Below are positions 3-55,013 of a stretch of 64,000 nucleotides of DNA, piece by piece (position 1 is the stretch's first letter; each line of letters opens with the position of its first letter). The notes under the pieces were generated by a model, which was given only the letters and a program-made list of their open reading frames with translations, did not search any database and was not told the DNA's origin. A program made the translations under genes and the position numbers. This stretch comes from Paramoeba atlantica. Its lineage: Eukaryota > Protista > Discosea. The stretch covers positions 186,001 through 250,000 of the forward strand of contig CDRNVI010000030.1 of assembly GCA_977017575.1 (NCBI GenBank). The letters are read 5' to 3'.

Positions 3-352
3 CCCTGGTAGGCCTCCCAAAATGACATATTTTCGACTAAAAAATGCGAAAAAGTATTTTTCGAACCCAAAGGGGTGTTTTTGTGTCGAAAGAATGATGT
101 GGTCATGCGTACGAGTGATTTCCCCCGCCGAAATGTCGGATTTAGTGCTCTGAGAGCGTACGTAGAAATGTCCCTATTTTTACCTAAAAATCGGCTATTT
201 TTGGCTCAAATCCTTCCGTTTTCTTCCGCGTTCCTGGCCAATTTTTCTCTTTAGGCTCTTCGTTAAACGCGGTGGTAGTTTTCAACGCGAAGCGCGCAGC
301 ATGAGTGACTTCTAAGTTAAAAATAACCACCGCGTTTAACGAGGAGCCTAAA
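3..352 (+). repeat. Left arm of a ~350-400 bp inverted repeat (partner 4597-4994); contains an internal palindrome at 240-359
   Basis: GGTAGGCCTCCCAAAATGAC... aligns by eye at roughly 80-85% to the reverse complement of 4597-4994 (GGTACGCCTCCCAAAATGAC...), apart from one ~45 bp indel. Confidence 0.85.
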
Positions 353-1028
353 GAGAATTGCGACACGAGAACAATAAGAGTCCAGCGGGTAAGTCCAGCG
401 GGTAACGCAGATGTGTCTAAGCCACGTGTGAATTGATTGTATGGTACCACCAAGAAGGCTAGGTGGGAAGGAAGCATCTCAAAAAGGTACCCCCCTGGTA
501 AAGTGATTTTTTTCTGCTCGAATTTGACGAAATGTGGCCCATAAATACCTCCACTGGAGGGAGCCTTTGAGTCCCACATCGGTCCACTCGATCCCGACAA
601 CTTCGAGATTTGTTGCACAACGCACACCTGTTCAGTCACACGCAGGTACGTATGTGTTCCAAGAGGAATCAGAATTTTCAATATCTGTGGTAAATTTCGT
701 ATTCCTGGGGTAAGTTCGCTATAATGCTTGTGAAAAATATTGTTTCGATTGGTTAATTCTATCCTGGTTATTTTCGTGACAAATCACCTGAACGGAAAAC
801 TCACAAGGAATGTACAACGTATTACAACATGCAGTGTAGGTGTGCCCGCAACACAATGAGGCGAATTTTGACGCTTTTGTAGTTTCACCCGACCCCGAGT
901 ACATTAGGAAAGAGTCCATAAGGAAGAAAGAGGTGGAAAACACCCACCGCAATACAGTGTAAAGGTGCAATGTGCCTATAAAGGTCAAATCCCCTGATGC
1001 CTTCATGTTAACCTCTACAAATATTTCC

Positions 1029-3790: not shown

Positions 3791-4596
3791 ATGCCACTTG
3801 TATGATGCCACTGTATTCATACACATGTGTGCCACTTGTTATTGTTGTTGTTACAAAACCTCCTACAATCCCCACATGCAAGCGCCGCAAGTACCATTCC
3901 GGCTTCCTTCTTCCTTAGGTCAACTTAGGTTTCTTGGGCCATGGGTTGCGCCGTCGGCTGGACCGCAAAGACCAGACCAGACACCCTAATCCTTTCTGTA
4001 ACCCGTCAGGCTTGAACTGCCCAGAATCATCCTAACTGCACGTGGGGCATTTTCCGCAGCCAAAGAACCATGGTCGAGGCCAGCTGATGGGCGGCGCCCA
4101 CCGTTACGACACAACACGAGCTTTCAACCAGAAAATACCCTCTCTACACCAATTACTGCTCGTCAATGTCATCACAAGCGACGATGTACAGTGTATATTA
4201 TTACCCCCTTTTCTCCGCAGACGAGACAACCGCCACGCGCGTGTGGTACTCTTCCTCCTCCACGTCCTCTCTCCCTATTGTGGCTCTCAGGAACCTCCCG
4301 GTCCCAACATTCCAGGAGCGTCTCCGCTCGAACCTCAACCGTCGTCGCAACGGAGGCCAAAAGACCTCGATCTCCTTGATCGCGACTATCCAGTGGCCAG
4401 CAATCCACCTTCGTGCGCTCCATGCTGAACACTCGCCCCCATGTGATCCCAACCACCACGTTGAGCCGTACACCAAGGGAGCGAATCGTATGTAGACAAT
4501 TATTTTTGTCCTTATCTTTTACTTCTCATGATCATTTATTTGAAGACATTTACAATAATATAAACAAAACTAAAAAAATACAATATTAATCAATAA

Positions 4597-4994
4597 TTTA
4601 GACTCTTCGTTAAACGCGGTGGTTATTTTCAACTTAGAAGTCACTCATGTTTGCGCGCTTCGCGTTGAAAACTACCTCCGCGTTTAATGAAGCGCCTAAA
4701 AAAGAAAAATTGGCTTCGAAAATGGAAGAAAACGGAAGGATTTGAGCCAAAAATAGCCGATTTTTAGGTAAGAATAACGTTTTTTTTCGTATTTTTGCTC
4801 TCAGAGCACTAAATCCGACATTTGCGTGTGGAAAATCACTCGTACGCATGAATTAAAGCCTACAGAACGTGTTGTGTAGATAATGCGCCCCCAACCACAC
4901 CATTCTTCCGACACAAAAAGACCCCTTTGGGTCCGAAAATTGCCTTTTCACCTTTTTTAGTCAAAAATGGGTCATTTTGGGAGGCGTACCACGG
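4597..4994 (-). repeat. Right arm of the long inverted repeat (partner 3-352)
   Basis: Reverse complement of 3-352, including the internal GTTAAACGCGGTGG/CCGCGTTTAA palindrome. Confidence 0.85.
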
Positions 4995-5559
4995 CTCCAA
5001 GAAGGGGTATCTTGTGAAAACAACAGTGTAGAAAGCTAGTATAGAGTAGGTCCCAAACTATCAAAATACAATAGGGGAAATAAATTCAAAAAAATATTTT
5101 TTTTGCCATTTTTTTCGCCGAGTTGAATTTTTTTTCAAAAACAAATTTCCGAAAAAATCCGAACTTGGCGGACCCGTCCTGCGGATACGAGGGGGGCTCA
5201 CCCCCGGGTAGGGGGGTGGAAAATTATCGCCGCGGCTTACTCTACCACTTCCTTGCGCTCGATTTTGAAAAGGAAAAACCTTGGAAAAAAATCGTGACGT
5301 ACGCCCCCCGGCTGGACCCCCCCCTAGACCCCCCATTTTTTTGATTTTTTTTTCAATTTTGGACCACCGGAGCCCCCTTTAATATTTTTTTATATTTTTG
5401 TCTTCTATTATAAACCACCCCCAATGAAAAGTGACCCACCCCTTTTTTTTCGTACAAGTGTCCATTTGAGATGATTTTTGTTGCATTTTGCAGATCTCAA
5501 CACAAAGACTCTGCGCGAGAAGGAATGAAACTAAAAGAAGCGAATAAGTATAATTTAGA

Positions 5560-5960
5560 GGGAAATTTCCATTTTGTCGCTTTTTCGCCGTTCAATTTTA
5601 TACACTGTTTAAGGCGAGAGTCAAAGCTTAAGACCGTTTTGTCGATTACTTTTTGAGGCAAAGAAGACCATACTTTTCGTACACATCGGATAAGTGAAGG
5701 TTTTTCGATGGGGTTTGTTCTACTGCCTCTTGAACCATAGACCAGACGTTTTCTATGCGGGAAAGGTCTGGTGAATTGGGGGGCCAATTCTTTAATAAAT
5801 CTTTCATTCTACTTGTAATGTAGTCCTTAGAGGCATGGGCGGTGTGTGCCGTTGCCCCATCTTGTCGAAAAATACAATTCATGGGGAATGTTACCTTTTT
5901 GAGCGTCTCTATGTAGGACATACTCGTGATAGACGAGTCAGAATCCAGAATAACCAAGTG
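5560..5960 (-). pseudogene. Tc1/mariner (DD34E-type) transposase C-terminal relic
   Basis: FRQDGATAH...WPPNSPDLSRIENVWS, then a frameshift to KVWSSLPQKVIDKTVLSFDSRLKQCIKLNG. Confidence 0.85.
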
Positions 5961-6289
5961 TGTCCACCCTACTCCTATGGCACCCCAAACTTGACATCTT
6001 GGCGCCCAGCGTACTTTTTGCCGCGGGACTGATTTTTTGACCGGGTGCTACCCACATATTCTTTCGGCTATCATTCGTGTCAACTATTTTTTCGTCTGTT
6101 TCATATTCTTTCGGCTATCATTCGTGTCAAATATTTTTTCGTCTGTTTCATCGCTCGAGCGAGCCCCGCTAAATAGGAGGGGGAAGGTGGTAGCTGTGGG
6201 GTATGGAGGCCTCTCGCAACTCCGGGGCCTCACCGGGAGCAGAGACGAGTGTTCACTATTTCTTGAAAACACATTCAATTTCCAAATAA

Positions 6290-6365
6290 TGCATCATCAA
6301 TGTGCTGTATGCATTATCAATGTGCTGTATGCATTATTAATGTGCTGTATGCATTATCAATGTGC
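6290..6365 (+). repeat. 20-bp minisatellite (TGTGCTGTATGCATTATCAA), continued at 9033-9099 beyond the Tc1 palindrome
   Basis: About 4 units on the left; the TATGCATTATCAATGTGC core recurs 3 times in the same orientation on the right. Confidence 0.9.
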
Positions 6366-6650
6366 TACAGTAACTAACAAAAGTGTTCAAATGTTTTCAC
6401 AAATTTTAATGTTTTTATATTTTACAAAAGAGATGCAGAGGATAATGCAGTAGTATATTACAGTAGTGTAGGCTGGAGTAGTGCTTACATTCCCACGTAC
6501 TTAGACTTCATCAACGATCTTACAATAAAAAACTATGAAAGATGTAATGCGATCCCAACACTTGAACACTTTTTTCACTTTTTTGAGATTATTTTTTTTT
6601 GACCAAAACTTTGCCTTACTTCACCCTTACCAAACCAAAATGACCAAAAC

Positions 6651-7670
6651 TTAATACTTCGTAAGTCCCCCCTTCGCCCTAATTACTGCCCTTAAACGAC
6701 GGGGCATGCTGCGGACAAGAGGAAGACATGCACTCGGAGGAAGGCCTGCCCACGCTTTTTGGGCGCGTTCCCAAAGTTCCAACATTCCTACGGGAGGATC
6801 TGGATGATCCGCAGTCGACTTTTTGAGCTCGCCCCATAGGTGCTCTATGGGATTTAAATCGGGAGACTGCGGGGGCCAGTCTAGGACACACAATTCTTGT
6901 AAACGAAGGAATTCCCGGGCCTTCTTACTCGTGTGCTTTGGATCATTATCTTGTTGGAAGATGATCCGGTCCTTCATGACTTCCAACTTGTGGAGGGAAG
7001 GAGACAAATTCTGTTGAAGTATTTGAACGTACTGTTCAGCATTCATGTTGCCATGAACCAGAGCAATGGAGCCCACGCCGTGAGCCATCATACACCCCCA
7101 TACCATGATGGATCCCCCACCGTACTTCACGGTGCTGTGTGTATTTCGCTCTGAAAGTGCTTCCCCAAAGCTCACCCACGCCCACCGGCTGCCATTCGAC
7201 TCGAAACGGCAGATCTTACTTTCATCAGTGAAAAGCACATGGCTCCAGTCGGCGTTCGTCCAATGCTCATACTTCTTTGCAAAGGCAAGACGTAGAGCTT
7301 TGTGACGCTTCGTAAGGTGGGGTTTCCGTAATTTCTTCTTCCCCTTCAAACCACGCTTCCGAAGGGAAACCCGAATGGTTTGGGGCGAAACATCTGCAAC
7401 CCCCTCATCTCTCAACCTTTTACTGGTCGCGACTGCATCCTTAGTTGCACCGCTGGTGATGAGGCGGCGGACGCGATTGGAGCATGTCTCTGTAAGCTTG
7501 CGAGGGCGACCTGTTTTCGGTTTGTTAACTAAGTTGGGTAGGTACTTTTTCTTAATGTTACTTACATTTCCTACGCTCAATTGTAGATCTGACGATACCT
7601 TCCGAATTGATAATCCGTTCTTTAGTTTTTCTATAACAAGCCTACGTAGATCACTGGGTGTACTGCGCAT
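6651..7670 (-). CDS. Tc1-family DD34E transposase (339 aa), left copy
   Basis: N-terminal HTH, GRPR motif, FTDESK / QQDNDPKH / SPDLNPIEHLW catalytic motifs; ORF open. Confidence 0.95.
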   Translation of the reverse strand: MRSTPSDLRRLVIEKLKNGLSIRKVSSDLQLSVGNVSNIKKKYLPNLVNKPKTGRPRKLTETCSNRVRRLITSGATKDAVATSKRLRDEGVADVSPQTIRVSLRKRGLKGKKKLRKPHLTKRHKALRLAFAKKYEHWTNADWSHVLFTDESKICRFESNGSRWAWVSFGEALSERNTHSTVKYGGGSIMVWGCMMAHGVGSIALVHGNMNAEQYVQILQQNLSPSLHKLEVMKDRIIFQQDNDPKHTSKKAREFLRLQELCVLDWPPQSPDLNPIEHLWGELKKSTADHPDPPVGMLELWERAQKAWAGLPPSACLPLVRSMPRRLRAVIRAKGGLTKY

Positions 7671-7727
7671 AGTGCAATGAAACGCAAGGTAAATAAAGAA
7701 AATCTTACTCCATTTACTATACTTTTT

Positions 7728-8747
7728 ATGCGCAGTACACCCAGTGATCTACGTAGGCTTGTTATAGAAAAACTAAAGAACGGATTATCAATTCGGAAGG
7801 TATCGTCAGATCTACAATTGAGCGTAGGAAATGTAAGTAACATTAAGAAAAAGTACCTACCCAACTTAGTTAACAAACCGAAAACAGATCGCCCTCGCAA
7901 GCTTACAGAGACATGCTCCAATCGCGTCCGCCGCCTCATCACCAGCGGTGCAACTAAGGATGCAGTCGCGACCAGTAAAAGGTTGAGAGATGAGGGGGTT
8001 GCAGATGTTTCGCCCCAAACCATTCGGGTTTCCCTTCGGAAGCGTGGTTTGAAGGGGAAGAAGAAATTACGGAAACCCCACCTTACGAAGCGTCACAAAG
8101 CTCTACGTCTTGCCTTTGCAAAGAAGTATGAGCATTGGACGAACGCCGACTGGAGCCATGTGCTTTTCACTGATGAAAGTAAGATCTGCCGTTTCGAGTC
8201 GAATGGCAGCCGGTGGGCGTGGGTGAGCTTTGGGGAAGCACTTTCAGAGCGAAATACTCACAGCACCGTGAAGTACGGTGGGGGATCCATCATGGTATGG
8301 GGGTGTATGATGGCTCACGGCGTGGGCTCCATTGCTCTGGTTCATGGCAACATGAATGCTGAACAGTACGTTCAAATACTTCAACAGAATTTGTCTCCTT
8401 CCCTCCACAAGTTGGAAGTCATGAAGGACCGGATCATCTTCCAACAAGATAATGATCCAAAGCACACGAGTAAGAAGGCCCGGGAATTCCTTCGTTTACA
8501 AGAATTGTGTGTCCTAGACTGGCCCCCGCAGTCTCCCGATTTAAATCCCATAGAGCACCTATGGGGCGAGCTCAAAAAGTCGACTGCGGATCATCCAGAT
8601 CCTCCCGTAGGAATGTTGGAACTTTGGGAACGCGCCCAAAAAGCGTGGGCAGGCCTTCCTCCGAGTGCATGTCTTCCTCTTGTCCGCAGCATGCCCCGTC
8701 GTTTAAGGGCAGTAATTAGGGCGAAGGGGGGACTTACGAAGTATTAA
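7728..8747 (+). CDS. Tc1-family DD34E transposase (339 aa from the homologous ATG), right copy
   Basis: Identical to the left copy except GRPR to DRPR; the ORF track extends to an upstream ATG at 7677 in the spacer. Confidence 0.95.
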   Translation: MRSTPSDLRRLVIEKLKNGLSIRKVSSDLQLSVGNVSNIKKKYLPNLVNKPKTDRPRKLTETCSNRVRRLITSGATKDAVATSKRLRDEGVADVSPQTIRVSLRKRGLKGKKKLRKPHLTKRHKALRLAFAKKYEHWTNADWSHVLFTDESKICRFESNGSRWAWVSFGEALSERNTHSTVKYGGGSIMVWGCMMAHGVGSIALVHGNMNAEQYVQILQQNLSPSLHKLEVMKDRIIFQQDNDPKHTSKKAREFLRLQELCVLDWPPQSPDLNPIEHLWGELKKSTADHPDPPVGMLELWERAQKAWAGLPPSACLPLVRSMPRRLRAVIRAKGGLTKY

Positions 8748-10224
8748 GTTTTGGTCATTTTGGTTTGGTAAGGGTGAAGTAAGGCAAAGTTTTGGTCAAA
8801 AAAAAATAATCTCAAAAAAGTGAAAAAAGTGTTCAAGTGTTGGGATCGCATTATATCTTTCATAGTTTTTTATTGTAAGATCGTTGATGAAGTCTAAGTA
8901 CGTGGGAATGTAAGCACTACTCCAGCCTACACTACTGTAATATACTACTGCATTATCCTCTGCATCTCTTTTGTAAAATATAAAAACATTAAAATTTGTG
9001 AAAACATTTGAACACTTTTGTTAGTTACTGTATATGCATTATCAATGTGCGGCACGTTATGCATTATCAATGTGCAGTAACTATGCATTATCAATGTGCG
9101 AGTGGGGACATAGGGTAATAGAGGGCGGTCTAACACTCCGAGAAATTCGACCAGTCAGCTATCCACGAGGAAGAACAATGGTTAGTGATCCGCACAGCTG
9201 CTCCGAATCCACACAGACCCTCCGAATAGGTCTGAGGTCTGGGGACCGACTCGGACCCCCCCGCATGGAACCAACTCCCGTACACGATGTGGTCGGTAAA
9301 CAACGTTAAACACGTCGGCTGAAACTGGTAGAGGCGTTCGGACCTCGCACCCCCAAACGTCTGTGAAGGACCTAGTATGTCACCCTTGAAGGAGGGTGAC
9401 AACTTCCCAAAGGGGGAACATCCTGAGGGAGCCAGCGGCCAGCCGGGGCGACCCGGTGCCCTTCATTCACTCAGAAACGCATTTGCCGTCCTGCGCTAGT
9501 CATCTGCGTTCGGGTAAGAAAATGTTGATTTCATGTGGATCAAAGCGTCGAAACTTCCTTCAGATCGCCGGGAAGAAACAAAGTAACCGATCATTCCCAA
9601 GTAATCGTCAGGGGTGCTCAAACGCCCACAAGAACGTCTCGCCGCGCTGACTTATTGCACTCTCGGCCAGAGTGTTGGATTTCTGGGTGATCTACCCATG
9701 GGAAAAGTTTCGACAGAGTGAATTACTATGCCATGTTACTAAAGAAATATGGTGCGACAAGTTAATAAAATTATGTGCTCAGAGACGCTGAAAATGGCTG
9801 CATGAATACGAAAATGATTTGAAAACGTTTAAAAAATTATTGTGAGCAATTTTGAAAAGAATCAATTTTTCGTCAAATATTTGTCCCTACCGCCCCATGA
9901 ATTTTTGACAATTTTTTCTCCAAAATATGACAATTTTTTCGTAAAAGAAAATCTAAAGCGCGTCGAATCCGTCAATTTAGTAGCCTATGTGATTTGTTTC
10001 TTCTCTACTACCAAATGTATATGCTTTAAATAATTCGGGTACTCTATGGTGAAAATGTACCCTAAAATTTCGATTTTTTCAAAGTGTTTTCACAAAACGA
10101 AATTGAAGAATAATGGGTGAAAGTCAAGCATTATTTCACAAAAAAAACATTTTTGTTGATGTTCTCATTTGATCATATTTTACTTACAAAGTGTTTTTTA
10201 GGATATTTTTCGCATATTTCTGCA

Positions 10225-13632: not shown

Positions 13633-14874
13633 TATTTAAGGTGCACTTTTCTTAAAATTGCCTTTCGCTCTTTGTTAAAGCTTCTCTGGCGCTTTCTTCC
13701 TTTGAGGCCGCGATTGATGCGTGATTGAAAAAAAGAGGCACCGTTGCTTTCAATACTTCGGACAATTCCTAAACTGGAAGCATGATGATGACAAACCAAA
13801 ATTTTTTGAAGATTTTGGAAGCATGGCGCGTGACCGAAGAGAAATGTCCTCACCATCACGAGGGTGGCAAAGTTCGTGACTCTGCTTCTAGTATTTGTTG
13901 GAGGCGATGTAAGCACGGAAGTTGCAGAAAATGATTGTCTCGATTACATCCTTACTTTTTTGCAGATGTGCGCAAACCGTTCCACAAATTTTAGTTTTGG
14001 TAAACCATTACGAAATTGCCATCCAGTTTCATCCGCTGCCATCTAAATCTTCATAGTGTCCAACTGATGAAGGGATTTAATAATAAAGTTTCAATTATTT
14101 CCATACACGAATATATTAGAAATTTACACCATATTTGCTCTACTTTTTGGTCAAAAAAATTGGTCATTTTTTCCCGGACATTTTTTTTTTCGAAACGGCA
14201 CTATAAGTGGGGGGGGCACAGTACAAATGCATAATAATAAATGATTTATTCATCATTTTGATGTCCTCGATCTTGGAGACTGTGCAGCTAACCGGTCCCC
14301 TCCCTGTGCCCTCTTGTGCCATTTCATGCCATTTCCATGTCAACCCACACTGGAAATAATGAGGTTTTTAAAATGGAAATAAGGAGAATTCAACGATCAA
14401 GGGGTTCCATTGTCTACCAATCTCCGAAAAAGCAAGTAAAAAGCGAGTAAAGCGAAAAGCAGAACTTTCCGAAATCGGAGATTTCGTTGATTGGTACGTA
14501 GAACCGGCAGAACTCTACGTAGAATACCAACTATGAGGGTAGTGAAATTTTGGTAGTGAATTTTTTTTACCTTTTATGTTAGCTAGTTCTTTTGCCTACA
14601 GCTACGTATTGTGCCTATAGCTAGTTACTGTGCCGGGGGGCACCGGGAATATGGTTTCCTTTTTTCTTTTCATCTGAACCTCGCCCATCACTAAAATAAT
14701 GTACATCGAATAAATAAAAAAGGAGCGACACAAGAAGCGGGGTTACACTTGTCACCTGAGATACAGATCTCGGCATGAAACTGCATACTAAAAATGAAGT
14801 CTGCCCTTTGATAAACGTGCGGAAAGATTCACAATTCATATCTATTTCAACTACAATAAACTTGTATTTCGACG

Positions 14875-21471: not shown

Positions 21472-21547
21472 TATGCCCGTTGCCGGGGAAAGAAAAGATG
21501 AACTAAAGGGAAAATGTACCAACAAGGTACAGAAACTGTATCTTTAT
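21472..21547 (-). ncRNA. SL-RNA-gene-like sequence (exon 3' part, GT intron, GNRA hairpin)
   Basis: ATAAAGATACAGTTTCTGTACCTTGTTG|GTACATTTT...CCCG-GCAA-CGGG; the 16-nt core matches the trypanosomatid SL core and the TTG|GTA junction mirrors the SL donor site; no clear Sm site seen. Confidence 0.7.
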
Positions 21548-26363: not shown

Positions 26364-26369
26364 CAACAA
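24343..26369 (-). CDS. ORF1 region in two frames (25275-26369, likely ATG at 26324; 24343-25269) with four CxHxC-x5-CxHxCC fingers and Pro-rich linkers
   Basis: CAHKCRDKTSCLHACCK, CKHTCRDKRNCLHKCCK, CRHICSNKAQCKHRCCK, CAHKCKDKATCKHQCCQ. Confidence 0.75.
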
Positions 26370-26391
26370 GGTACAGAAACTGTATCTTTAT
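26364..26391 (-). repeat. SL-exon-like 28-mer at the element 5' end (no GT intron follows)
   Basis: Identical to 21520-21547. Confidence 0.9.
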
Positions 26392-53050: not shown

Positions 53051-55013
53051 TTATATGGAGTGTTCCGTGTCAGATCCACGCTTTGCCGCCTTTTTTGCAC
53101 GACTTGTACGATACGGTAGCGAGTTCTCGTTTCCGCGAAGAAACATTTGTGTCGCTACAACATCTGTTCCAATGCGAGCTTGACGGGCACAATATTTCCA
53201 GGAAAGCACCGAAAGGATAGAGTCACATGCCGTCACTAGCGGAGGAAGCCATAGGTAATGCAATGCAGCTTCAAAAATTGTCGGAAAATGTTTCAACCCA
53301 AGTGTTTGCCACCACTCAAGATCGCTCATGCCGGGTGTCCACTGGTAATCGTCGCAGTTTACGTACGTACTCCATTCCTCAATAGTAATGTCGAAAATCG
53401 GGTCGCCAGTTCCCAACAAATCATTTACCCGTTTCACTGAAAGGGATTCCTTCTTGCGAGGTCGAGCGGATAAGAGGATCCACTCAGGCGAAAACCACAT
53501 CACAGCTGCCCATACCTTCATCTCGTGGTTTGAGCATACTCTATTGACGTGCCGATGTATCGACTCTAAGAAATGCCTGGGTGAATTCTCAGCAGACTCG
53601 ACAAGCTGTCGCAAAGTTGGATGAACAAGAGTTGCCATAGGACGATCCTACATGTCAGAGAATTTTTCTTGTGCGATGCGTAACGGCATACAGTCTTTCA
53701 GGAAATCCTTCGCAGACTGCATCAAGTCGTTCGAAGAGTTGTTTTCGAACAAATCAGCCAAATGGTGGACAGATTGAGGGGCTCGCAGAGTTTCCAGTTC
53801 ACTTTTTATGAAGGATGCGACAGTAGGCAACTGATCAGCCAAAAACCTCATGCTTTCGAATTTATCCGCGAGCCATCGCGTGACCCCGCCAAGTTTGGGA
53901 GAAGTGACGGCTCGAATTTCATGAGAATATGCAATGGATTTCACCACACTAGCACCTTTCGCAATTAGAATCTCACATTGGTCTTCTATTTCCAGAGTTT
54001 GATTCAGTTCGGCAAACACATCGCGTGCCTTTAAAGATACTTTCGAGAGAGTTTGCAATGCTTCCTTGAGATGAGCTATGGTGTCCCTGCGACCCCTCTT
54101 GTCAAGGTTTTCGCTGTTCACAGAACGATAAAAAGATTTAAAGTACGATTCAGCTTTTTGAGTCTCTTCGTCAAAGGCGCTTAATATATCTTCAAGAGCT
54201 TTTCCGAAATACTTCCCCTTCTTTGCCCCCACACGGTCCCCTGCATAGAAAATCCTGGAGAAGTATGTTCTTACTTTCATAATTGGCAGATTTGCGTAGT
54301 GCTGCATTGCATCTTTGGCCATATTATGAAACAAGTGTCCGAAGCATGGTAATAGCGCGACACGTGGACAGTGCTTCGTCACGCCAATTACAATGTTCTC
54401 CCGGTCCGTGCTTCCGATAGAGCTGAGGCGCGAGTAAAATTCTTCCTCTGCGGAAACAAGAGAGTCACGAATGCCTAACATAGTGGTTTCTATTTCCTGC
54501 CTAGCCACATTATTTACTGGGGCTCCGTCTGCCATTATGAATCGCAACTTTAGGAGTCGGCTCTCGGAGAGGCATGACCGAAGTACTTCTATCAGGGATT
54601 GTGCCATCTCGCTACCGTTAAATGATTTGTGCTTAGGGTGGTAGATAGGTGGGAGAATAAAGTGGCGATCCACAACATACAAAATGGCGATAAGTACATG
54701 TTCGCTAAGAACCCTGTCAACTCCACCGTCGATTTGCGAGGCCAAAGAATTTAGCTCCATCTATGGTTCGTCGAATGTCTTCCCAGATCATGTCGGCAAT
54801 TCGACGTTCACTGATATGAAATTCGTGAGGAGAAGGAAGGATCGATGCAGCTTCTGAAGGATGTATGTCGGGGGGAAATTCTTGAAATAAGTTCTTTACG
54901 CACTCGAGGAATCCTTCGGTAGAAAGATTGCTCTGAGCTGCGAAACATGGGAGAGCTTCGGAGATGTACTCCTCTAGCGACTTGGGATTTGCAACTTCAC
55001 TGGAGTCTTCCAT
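53051..55013 (-). pseudogene. hAT-like transposase (frameshift at ~54750, in-frame TAG at 53648-53650)
   Basis: KFF..ASQIDG, MADGAPVN, CFGH, VTRW, and a C-terminal FPTIF...LWLPP...FLRGN dimerization-like region. Confidence 0.75.

Follow-up and report, generated by a model that had tools for sequence, protein, structure and literature searches.

How does a Tc1-type transposon come to carry its gene twice, once on each strand, and can it move in that form? The question is raised by a locus in the 64,000-nt stretch of Paramoeba atlantica DNA that was analysed here (the window). A first-pass annotation had described two complete transposase-bearing arms joined head to head and proposed that they had transposed as one unit. 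The reading that we favour, with considerable confidence, is that this is a copy of a functional-looking Tc1 family (DD34E, Sleeping Beauty-like) whose normal full-length form is a palindrome with two gene-bearing inverted arms, the terminal inverted repeats having in effect been enlarged to hold the whole gene.

Architecture of the palindrome

A repeat search returns two inverted arms, at 6366-7671 and at 7727-9032, separated by 55 nt; less the flanking TA, each is 1304 bp long (Table 1). Repeat and ORF analysis bear out the palindrome as first described, with its 55-bp spacer and its two head-to-head 339-aa DD34E ORFs, and base-by-base comparison of the arms turns the earlier estimate of about three differences into exactly three (6544/8854, 7140/8258 and 7510/7888). 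The whole element is a near-perfect palindrome of ~2.7 kb (a 2.66-kb unit), in which inverted repeats of extreme length enclose the whole gene, leaving two genes, no separate 5' end and 55 nt of unique sequence.

Table 1. Features of the element and its insertion site (window coordinates)
Feature	Position	Strand	Basis or remark
Target minisatellite, left part, four 20-nt units	6289..6365	+	Repeat and motif search
TA target-site duplication, left	6366..6367	.	Direct sequence reading; junction GTGC-TA-CAGT
Left arm, 1304 bp: transposase ORF, 3' UTR and terminus CAGTAACTAAC	6368..7671	-	Inverted repeat, 3 mismatches
Transposase ORF, 339 aa, DD34E	6651..7670	-	ORF list, Pfam, SB100X comparison
Central spacer, 55 nt, unique	7672..7726	.	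Base-by-base arm comparison
Right arm, 1304 bp, mirror of left arm	7727..9030	+	Inverted repeat
Second transposase ORF, 339 aa	7728..8747	+	ORF list, residue comparison
Inner copy of terminal motif	8818..8841	+	24 nt, 83% complementary, inverted relative to outer end 9003-9026, 161 nt apart
TA target-site duplication, right	9031..9032	.	Direct sequence reading
Target minisatellite, right part, three cores with irregular linkers	9033..9099	+	Repeat and motif search
9-nt terminus copy CAGTAACTA in place of the normal TG linker of a minisatellite unit	9075..9083	+	45 nt from insertion

The two outer ends are identical (CAGTAACTAAC) and start with CAGT, as Tc1-type terminal inverted repeats do. 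Their terminal 18-mer, CAGTAACTAACAAAAGTG, is found within the window only at these two places (0.05 chance matches expected), and no distinct 5' end is present, so that the identical TA-flanked ends and the missing 5' end of the first description both stand. Inner termini (CAGT with TA) are absent at 7671/7727. The arms are unique coding sequence, in which Tandem Repeats Finder detects only trivial repeats of 8-10 nt, and scanning the window against Rfam at gathering thresholds gives no match. The inner copy of the terminal motif, which has its left-arm mirror at about 6557-6580, may be a candidate second transposase-binding site. The first half of the spacer is 74% purine and the second half is pyrimidine-rich; a pyrimidine-rich stretch therefore precedes either ORF. 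The first AG past the pyrimidine-rich half falls after the ATG, so there is no obvious trans-splice site.

Tc1 elements are frequently found nested in this genome, and one might accordingly look for the origin of the structure in two ordinary copies that chanced to insert head to head or one within the other, as a kind of composite. Neither arm has its own 5' end, however, the two end on one and the same base, 1 nt ahead of the ATG, and that boundary is conserved in every relative; a chance pairing is vanishingly improbable.

The transposase

Pfam profiles identify a DDE_3 domain (2.8e-15) preceded by HTH_Tnp_Tc3_2 (1.5e-09) and HTH_32 (1.5e-04), which provide the N-terminal bipartite helix-turn-helix DNA-binding domain of the Tc1-like DD34E group. 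The catalytic residues are D149, D241 and E276, with 34 residues from the second D to the E, and the catalytic domain aligns with that of Sleeping Beauty SB100X at E = 1.4e-57, with DE, DNDPKH and NPIE in register. These matches place the transposase in the Tc1/mariner superfamily, as a Tc1-like DD34E enzyme of the Sleeping Beauty type.

The two ORF products differ at a single residue, G54 in the left arm and D54 in the right. The left-arm ORF keeps the consensus GRPR motif; the G54D of the right arm is a derived change in that motif, all other arms that were compared having G at the site (site 217). An upstream ATG at 7677 would lengthen the right-arm ORF to 356 aa.

The insertion site

The element lies in a minisatellite, four copies of whose 17-nt core are found to its left and three to its right, all on the plus strand; the same direction of the repeat on both sides had already been remarked on in the first-pass annotation. 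The junctions read GTGC-TA-[element]-TA-TATGC, against GTGC-TG-TATGC in the regular unit. The terminus copy CAGTAACTA occurs four times in the window: at the two element ends, at 9075..9083 and at an unrelated site at 14622. The copy within the minisatellite may be an old excision footprint.

An alternative origin is a one-off rearrangement on the spot, in which a 5'-truncated Tc1 was duplicated in inverted orientation and the palindrome was never mobile as a unit. Inverted duplications do occur locally, and the window copy is the only one that is fully intact. But the minisatellite keeps its phase and direction across the element, with TA duplicated, the same architecture is found at other loci with unrelated TA flanks (L002 and L003, described below), which contradicts a local event, and the same centre recurs in a subfamily that is ~22% diverged. 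A local origin is very hard to credit.

Relatives in the same assembly

About 11 loci with relatives were fetched, all reached by protein look-ups. L003, also a twin, has arms of 1295 and 1238 nt and has lost ~135 bp at its centre. In L002 the 55-bp spacer is the same; one arm is full, and the other has a 717-bp deletion and retains its inner 48 nt and outer 543 nt. Both have TA on both sides and flanks unrelated to those of the window copy. At least two more twin-type copies at other TA-flanked sites, of the kind that the first-pass annotation had proposed looking for, thus exist in this assembly, and the mobility of the structure as one unit is supported: the twin with identical termini sits between duplicated TA at several unrelated loci. 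TA also borders L007 on either side, and both ends of L009, which lies inside a (TATC)n microsatellite whose repeat phase is restored exactly by removing the element and one TA.

The remaining loci preserve less of the second arm. The 55-nt spacer of the window copy is also present in L002, L004 and L010, the last with the inner 107 nt of a second arm. In subfamily B, ~22% diverged from the subfamily of the window copy, an inverted ORF start lies across a 59-nt spacer that is homologous to the 55-nt one (105 nt in L006, 40 in L007, 29-34 in L009 and 27 in L011/L008), and the boundary of the inverted copy is identical at all these loci. Among the fetched relatives as a whole, all except L004, L005 and L012 repeat the initial 27-107 nt of the ORF in inverted form across a spacer of 55-59 nt, with the boundary always 1 nt ahead of the ATG. 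Because the inverted ORF start, the homologous spacer and the boundary recur, even in a subfamily ~22% diverged, the head-to-head centre is inherited across subfamilies and ancestral to the family, an old trait and not a recent derivative of some single-ORF parent.

Copies decay through loss or interruption of one arm or through loss of the centre. The spacer of L008/L011 points the opposite way with respect to the arm that remains, and therefore either arm can survive; these two are one locus seen twice rather than separate copies, since their flanks are 98% identical and L008 has an extra 1.2-kb deletion. The 153-nt left end of L007 was considered as a normal long terminal inverted repeat, but 40 nt of inverted ORF start follow it directly, which favours reading it as a left arm with an internal deletion. 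A splice-donor account of the breakpoints of L010 and L006 (107 and 105 nt) was likewise set aside: GTAAGT is there in subfamily A and absent in subfamily B, and the L006 break is the edge of another inserted repeat. The deletions in L002, L007 and L009 may postdate insertion, and for that reason these loci do not tell which forms can move.

Fold-back chimeras are known to arise in amplified long-read libraries, and a palindrome calls for scrutiny on that account. Logan contigs (DNA-type) of other runs from the same organism contain the head-to-head centre, with sequence variants: a 115-nt unitig of run X2 consists of the spacer and 30 nt of each arm and carries a SNP, and element ends are joined to different flanks in runs X1, X2 and X4. 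That these short-read-derived contigs join the spacer to both arm starts speaks against an artefact of assembly or amplification, as do the three positions at which the arms differ, the normal flanks that continue on both sides, the presence of the architecture at three or more loci, each with its own substitutions and deletions, and the retention of the same centre by old, decayed relatives. An artefact is highly improbable.

The ordinary single-ORF parent that the first-pass annotation had envisaged did not come to light at the fetched loci. No relative with a distinct 5' region is found among the 11, every one of them lacking a distinct 5' end, and the head-to-head centre is common to subfamilies ~22% apart. 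In L004, which is 94% identical, unique sequence lies ahead of the spacer and runs on in frame into the transposase; no left terminus is present within 5.4 kb, and the upstream sequence matches no other locus. The same genome does hold a standard single-ORF Tc1 with 112-nt terminal inverted repeats (L004 6865-8438), and the twin architecture is therefore not a requirement for Tc1 here.

Concerted evolution of the arms

Within a copy the arms differ at 3/1304 positions (window copy), 1/1235 (L003) and 5/530 (L002). Between copies the count is 4-7 for the window copy and L003, and 19-20/1299 for the window copy and L002. Ten sites have a state that is common to the two arms of one copy and absent from both arms of the other copies. 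Since a copy thus has substitutions of its own in both arms, its arms evolve in concert and are in this way kept alike.

The likeness of the arms of each twin, which exceeds that of arms of different copies, also has a reading in which twins are not inherited at all. Single-arm elements with a short inverted repeat (27-107 nt of ORF start) would regenerate a full palindrome when, after a break beside the repeat, the repeat snapped back and primed synthesis, so that every new twin would start with identical arms and a common centre. In other systems breaks are known to turn short inverted repeats into large palindromes, the majority of loci bear just the short inverted repeat and the spacer, and all copies have an identical centre, as deterministic fold-back predicts. 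Subfamily B, for which the fetched loci yielded no full twin and whose longest inner remnant is 105 nt, could have had only a short inverted repeat, which counts against the inherited twin. Against regeneration, the short remnants vary in length (27, 29-34, 40, 48, 105 and 107 nt), and at least two of them (L006 and L011) end at other inserted repeats and not at a fixed boundary; the 543 nt that the short arm of L002 keeps include inverted ORF sequence, which derives it from a full twin; and a single arm needs a left end of its own in order to move, whereas only L009 and L007 show one, in both cases resembling a deleted left arm. Microhomology at the palindrome junction that might support snap-back priming was looked for, and none is seen in the present sequence. 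We regard regeneration from single arms as unlikely, though it deserves to be kept in mind.

If, as we prefer, the twin is the inherited form, the transposase would bind the identical terminal motifs of both arms and the whole 2.66-kb unit would move by ordinary cut-and-paste into TA. Arm identity could be renewed when single-stranded palindromic DNA folds back in repair or replication and one arm serves as template for the other, by gene conversion or by snap-back synthesis.

Genomic setting, expression and silencing

Genes in the window run predominantly one way: 19 of 22 ORFs of at least 220 aa are on the minus strand. Nine of the minus-strand ORFs were scanned, and seven of these are LRR genes. 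On the plus strand one was scanned, a transposase; apart from it, the right arm of the element is the sole plus-strand ORF that reaches this size. A spliced-leader motif of the kinetoplastid type occurs at two sites, and the genome looks kinetoplastid-like, with a kinetoplastid-type spliced leader. The left-arm ORF is sense relative to the surrounding minus-strand cluster; across the relatives, the surviving ORF is sense to neighbouring host genes at four loci and antisense at two, which is not a significant bias.

Because the element lies in a one-directional gene cluster of a genome with a kinetoplastid-type spliced leader, read-through would likely yield a hairpin RNA. Such a transcript could fold into a 1.3-kb hairpin and trigger RNA interference, which makes self-silencing plausible. 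Given long, promoter-less, one-directional units, an ORF on each strand would guarantee one sense copy in either landing orientation, an attractive rationale for the twin layout. The larger proposition, that the palindrome is an adaptation combining an ever-present sense gene in promoter-less units, self-repair by arm templating and RNAi control of copy number, is offered tentatively and is less likely than not. Were it true, it would constitute a new way for a cut-and-paste transposon to secure its expression in promoter-less genomes.

Comparison with known systems

A twin-gene or palindromic layout for natural Tc1/mariner elements was not found in the literature searched, in keeping with the initial remark that no standard Tc1 of this architecture was known. 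With canonical Tc1 and Sleeping Beauty the element shares the paired-like HTH N-terminus, the DD34E domain, the TA duplication, the TA-CAGT termini and the logic of cut-and-paste. Canonical elements, in contrast, have one transposase gene flanked by non-coding 5' and 3' ends that differ from each other, with terminal inverted repeats of tens to a few hundred bp, an arrangement that the window element lacks.

Very long fold-back termini that are prone to internal deletion are also a feature of FB and Galileo of Drosophila and of Tc4 and Tc3 of C. elegans. The arms of FB and Galileo are non-coding and often made of tandem subrepeats, and the transposase, where there is one, is a single central gene. 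In the window element the arms themselves are the gene, and arms of tandem subrepeats with little coding capacity are not what is found.

Tn5 and Tn10 consist of two inverted transposase-bearing modules that are moved together by way of their outer ends, each IS having both ends and being able to move alone. The window element likewise pairs inverted transposase modules and uses the outer ends, but its arms are one-ended and it carries no cargo: the centre is 55 nt, and the terminal 18-mer is confined to the outer ends, which sets it apart from a composite transposon. Primate Y-chromosome palindromes, which undergo arm-to-arm gene conversion, resemble it in their near-identical arms and diverging spacers and copies, but are fixed chromosomal structures and not mobile. 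Concerted arms, central deletions, one-arm loss and many dated copies make the family a small model for palindrome biology.

In vitro, a Mos1 mariner bearing two right ends surpasses the natural left-right arrangement 26-fold in activity (PMC4505599). These donors, which were excised and transposed, share with the window element two identical inverted copies of one end; they were built in the laboratory with a marker and ends of 28 bp, whereas the window element is natural and its duplication spans the gene. The family thus provides a natural test of end choice, and it agrees with the laboratory finding that two identical preferred ends beat the natural left-right pair.

In maize, Mu killer and inverted duplications of Ac, the latter arising by alternative transposition, also combine an inverted duplication of a transposase gene with a read-through transcript that is a long hairpin capable of silencing (PMC3440606; bioRxiv 10.1101/2020.01.07.897926). 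They are immobile, partial and one-off, and they kill the family; the duplication described here is complete, mobile and long-lived, with a predicted hairpin transcript. DNA transposons in kinetoplastids were first reported only in 2021 (PMC8101967), and polycistronic transcription in a kinetoplastid-like genome would make transposon expression and the triggering of RNAi directly testable. What the family adds to these systems is evidence that a Tc1 whose inverted repeats take in the whole gene, with two genes and two identical ends, is viable, mobile and durable over long periods.

Anatomy of the window element

The element consists of two arms (1304 bp each, the outer TA left out) joined head to head across a 55-nt spacer. 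Its two transposases differ only at residue 54, for which the left arm encodes G and the right arm D. The protein contains DDE_3 and HTH_Tnp_Tc3_2 domains (Pfam); its catalytic half matches the catalytic domain of Sleeping Beauty SB100X (E = 1.4e-57) with all three catalytic motifs aligned, and the spacing of D149, D241 and E276 is DD34E. Both outer ends carry the terminus CAGTAACTAACAAAAGTG, an 18-mer with no further occurrence in the window (0.05 matches expected by chance), and TA adjoins each of them. The 17-nt core of the surrounding minisatellite occurs four times to the left of the element and three times to the right, in a single orientation throughout, and the insertion junctions read GTGC-TA-[element]-TA-TATGC. 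The first-pass annotation, which described these arms, spacer, DD34E ORFs, TA-flanked identical ends and the unchanged direction of the minisatellite, is borne out, its "about three" arm mismatches being exactly three.

The first half of the spacer is purine-rich and the second half pyrimidine-rich, so that a pyrimidine-rich stretch precedes each ORF. Since the first AG past that stretch falls beyond the ATG, no trans-splice acceptor can be named for these ORFs.

About 160 nt in from its end, each arm repeats the terminal motif in the opposite orientation to the outer copy, so that the last ~215 bp of the arm resemble a separate miniature element; in IR/DR elements such as Sleeping Beauty, in contrast, the inner repeats are direct. 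A 9-nt copy of the terminus, CAGTAACTA, stands where one minisatellite unit, at 45 nt from the insertion, would normally have its TG linker; it may be the footprint of an old excision or point to local hopping. The unit next to it has an odd linker of its own, GGCACGT.

Features of the window and of other loci with family members (A, the window copy's subfamily; B, a subfamily ~22% diverged; a twin has two head-to-head transposase arms; coordinates are those of each locus)
Locus	Feature	Coordinates	Strand	Remarks
Window (A; ctg4007l)	Full twin, 55-nt spacer			TA both sides, in minisatellite
Window	Inverted arms (repeat search)	6366-7671 / 7727-9032	- / +	55 nt between
Window	Arm mismatches (base-by-base comparison)	6544/8854, 7140/8258, 7510/7888		
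Window	Transposase ORF, left arm	6651-7670	-	339 aa
Window	Transposase ORF, right arm	7728-8747	+	339 aa
Window	Terminal motif, inner vs outer	8818-8841 vs 9003-9026		Mirrored in left arm
Window	9-nt terminus copy	9075-9083		
Window	47-nt tandem unit	6055-6151		2.1 copies, 98% identity
Window	Spliced-leader motif matches	21520-21538, 26364-26382	-	2 mismatches
Window	ORF, sub-threshold Pfam match only	53648-54760	-	
Window	DDE_Tnp_4/Harbinger-type transposase ORF	60772-61806	+	
L002 (A; ctg3254l)	Same 55-nt spacer, one full arm			Intact 339-aa ORF; TA both sides, unrelated AT-rich flanks
L002	Terminus of deleted arm	2542		CGGT, not CAGT
L003 (A; ctg3915l)	Twin of 2528 bp, complete at both outer ends			TA both sides, unrelated flanks
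L003	Foldback-like repeat, left flank	3937-4683		
L004 (A, 94% identical)	Spacer and single arm			Right end TA
L004	Extended ORF	4788-5954, 5453-6809		
L004	Conventional Tc1-type element	6865-8438		
L005 (A)	Central deletion, asymmetric; an internal fragment inverted			Right flank seen also in run X4
L005	Foldback-like repeat, left flank	18-786		
L006 (B)	Second-arm remnant	427-531		105 nt
L010 (A; ctg4005l)	Same 55-nt spacer; second-arm remnant	5889-5995		Inner 107 nt; right end TA

Reality of the palindrome

The source assembly (ENA ERZ24900291) is of long-read style, and Logan contigs of four other sequencing runs of the same organism (X1-X4) were aligned to window positions 5600-9800. A 115-nt unitig of X2 (7642-7756) spans the spacer and 30 nt of each arm, which is the output expected of a k = 31 graph where a genuine hairpin-shaped locus has its loop. 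Its SNP at 7688 (G>A) is also present in the spacers of L002 and L004, and X1 has another spacer variant. Element ends are joined to other flanks in X1, X2 and X4, the flank in X4 being the one found at L005. A fold-back artefact is excluded: the arms are not identical, ordinary flanks run on at both sides, the spacer is found in contigs of other runs and the architecture recurs with its own mutations. The palindrome is real.

Contig depth reaches thousands at 6164-6445, against tens to hundreds nearby, and therefore the minisatellite and the sequence immediately left of the insertion belong to a high-copy repeat; the 47-nt tandem unit lies just upstream. An empty-site-like junction, GTGC-TA-TATGC, is present in contigs of X1-X3, with other arrays as a possible source.

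A family of twin-gene palindromes

Six closely similar proteins, grouped in one 90% cluster, together with more distant fragments, led to eleven loci, which were compared by blastn and alignment. Because three twin-type insertions (the window copy, L003 and L002) lie at unrelated TA-flanked sites, the window element transposed as one unit, as the first-pass annotation had proposed; L003 and L002 are the further palindromes with different TA flanks for which it had suggested a search. The mechanism of movement, as the anatomy would have it, can be put forward with high confidence.

The centre of L003 lacks ~135 bp (11 nt of one arm, the spacer and 69 nt of the other arm), and only the inner 48 nt and outer 543 nt of the second arm of L002 remain, the altered end of which is probably no longer cleavable. 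To the left, L003 and L005 are flanked by members of one foldback-like repeat family, 84% identical to each other and containing hairpins of 41-49 nt, and each insertion is at or close to the end of such a repeat. The left end of L010 was looked for and not found, and L004 has no left terminus within 5.4 kb. The L004 ORF begins ~720 nt upstream, in unique sequence that matches no other fetched locus, and runs on across the spacer into the transposase without a change of frame; a fusion and a truncated relic are both possible readings.

Subfamily B (L006, L007, L009 and L011/L008) varies by 2-3% between members and differs by 21-23% from subfamily A. All its copies have an inverted copy of the arm's first 105 (L006), 40 (L007), 29-34 (L009) or 27 nt (L011/L008), which begins at one common base, the T before the ATG, across a 59-nt spacer that is alignable with the 55-nt spacer of A. 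It follows from this common base and the homologous spacers that the palindromic junction predates the A/B split. In L008/L011 the surviving arm has the spacer in the opposite orientation, which shows that the survivor can be either arm. L007 has both outer ends, with TA on both sides, and its left side, with the outer 153 nt directly joined to the inner 40 nt, reads as a left arm with an internal deletion. L009 lies inside a (TATC)n microsatellite, the phase of which is restored exactly by removing the element and one TA. The second arms of L006 and L011 end where other repeats start and, to judge by these junctions, are interrupted, not cleanly deleted.

The second-arm remnants of L010 and L006, copies that belong to different subfamilies, have endpoints no more than 2 nt apart; the L006 break coincides with the border of a further repeat, which L002, L008 and L011 also contain, and the sequence upstream in L010 is unique. 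L008 and L011 share 98%-identical sequence over >2 kb around the element, with 1.2 kb missing from L008, the right end and the greater part of the arm included; the pair probably represents either two haplotypes or a duplication of recent date.

No conventional, distinct 5' end was found in any A or B copy among the eleven loci. The ordinary single-ORF parent that the first-pass annotation envisaged did not materialize among these loci. Comparison of the copies supports a twin-gene palindrome as the family's full-length form, and the interpretation offered for one odd copy as extending to the whole family.

Concerted evolution of the arms

Differences between arms number 3/1304 in the window copy, 1/1235 in L003 and 5/530 in L002; the window copy differs from L003 at 4-7 positions and from L002 at 19-20/1299. 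At ten sites (seven in L002, three in L003) both arms of one copy have a base that is absent from both arms of the other copies. Two of the three window differences are private to the right arm, among them G54D in the GRPR motif (G in all other arms), and one is private to the left. The centre, with spacer and boundaries the same, is of single origin, and independent parallel mutation cannot explain the shared sites. They would arise if one arm repeatedly converted the other, or if a single arm, through fold-back synthesis at the conserved centre, gave rise to the twin anew. Such regeneration is unlikely; conversion or self-templated repair of inherited twins is favoured as keeping the arms alike, since the short arm of L002 still holds inverted ORF sequence. 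That concerted evolution keeps this twin-gene palindrome family uniform is supported.

Genomic context and expression

The minus strand carries 19 of the 22 window ORFs of at least 220 aa. Nine of its ORFs were scanned against Pfam: seven are LRR-protein genes (~280-300 aa, in a one-directional array), one is a reverse transcriptase and one has no match; the ORF with a sub-threshold match is a tenth. On the plus strand, ORFs of this size are limited to the element's right arm and the Harbinger-type transposase. The kinetoplastid-type spliced-leader 3' motif (used as a probe only) is matched twice. From the strand bias and this motif the genome looks kinetoplastid-like, with polycistronic one-directional transcription. 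The two motif matches lie at the ends of a retroelement, which they bracket.

Relative to this direction, the ORF of the left arm is sense. A read-through transcript would run from an arm in antisense across the spacer into an arm in sense, making a 1.3-kb hairpin, and we hypothesize that silencing could be a consequence. An adaptive rationale may be hypothesized as well: two ORFs would make expression independent of insertion orientation. The surviving ORF of one-arm copies is sense in four and antisense in two, which in a sample of six copies is not a significant excess.

The family member in L004 has as its immediate neighbour a conventional Tc1-type element, whose 112-nt TIRs are 96% complementary and whose one transposase ORF encodes 407 aa, so the standard Tc1 layout exists alongside the palindromic one in this genome.

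Comparison with known transposons

In protein and target site the window element is of the Tc1 type in every respect; only its layout is not canonical. DNA transposons were not reported from kinetoplastids until 2021 (PMC8101967). A full-text literature search of limited extent, which is no proof of novelty, turned up no natural Tc1/mariner element described as having a gene inside its inverted repeats. Foldback elements, Galileo, Tc4 and Tc3 have similarly long arms, but theirs are non-coding. Maize Mu killer (PMC3440606) and inverted duplications of Ac (bioRxiv 10.1101/2020.01.07.897926) share the hairpin potential, but are immobile and partial, and kill their families. Homogenization of arms is also a property of large chromosomal palindromes. 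The two identical ends have their likeness in Mos1 donors engineered to have a right end on both sides; in vitro, transposition of these donors is 26-fold better than that of the natural arrangement (PMC4505599).
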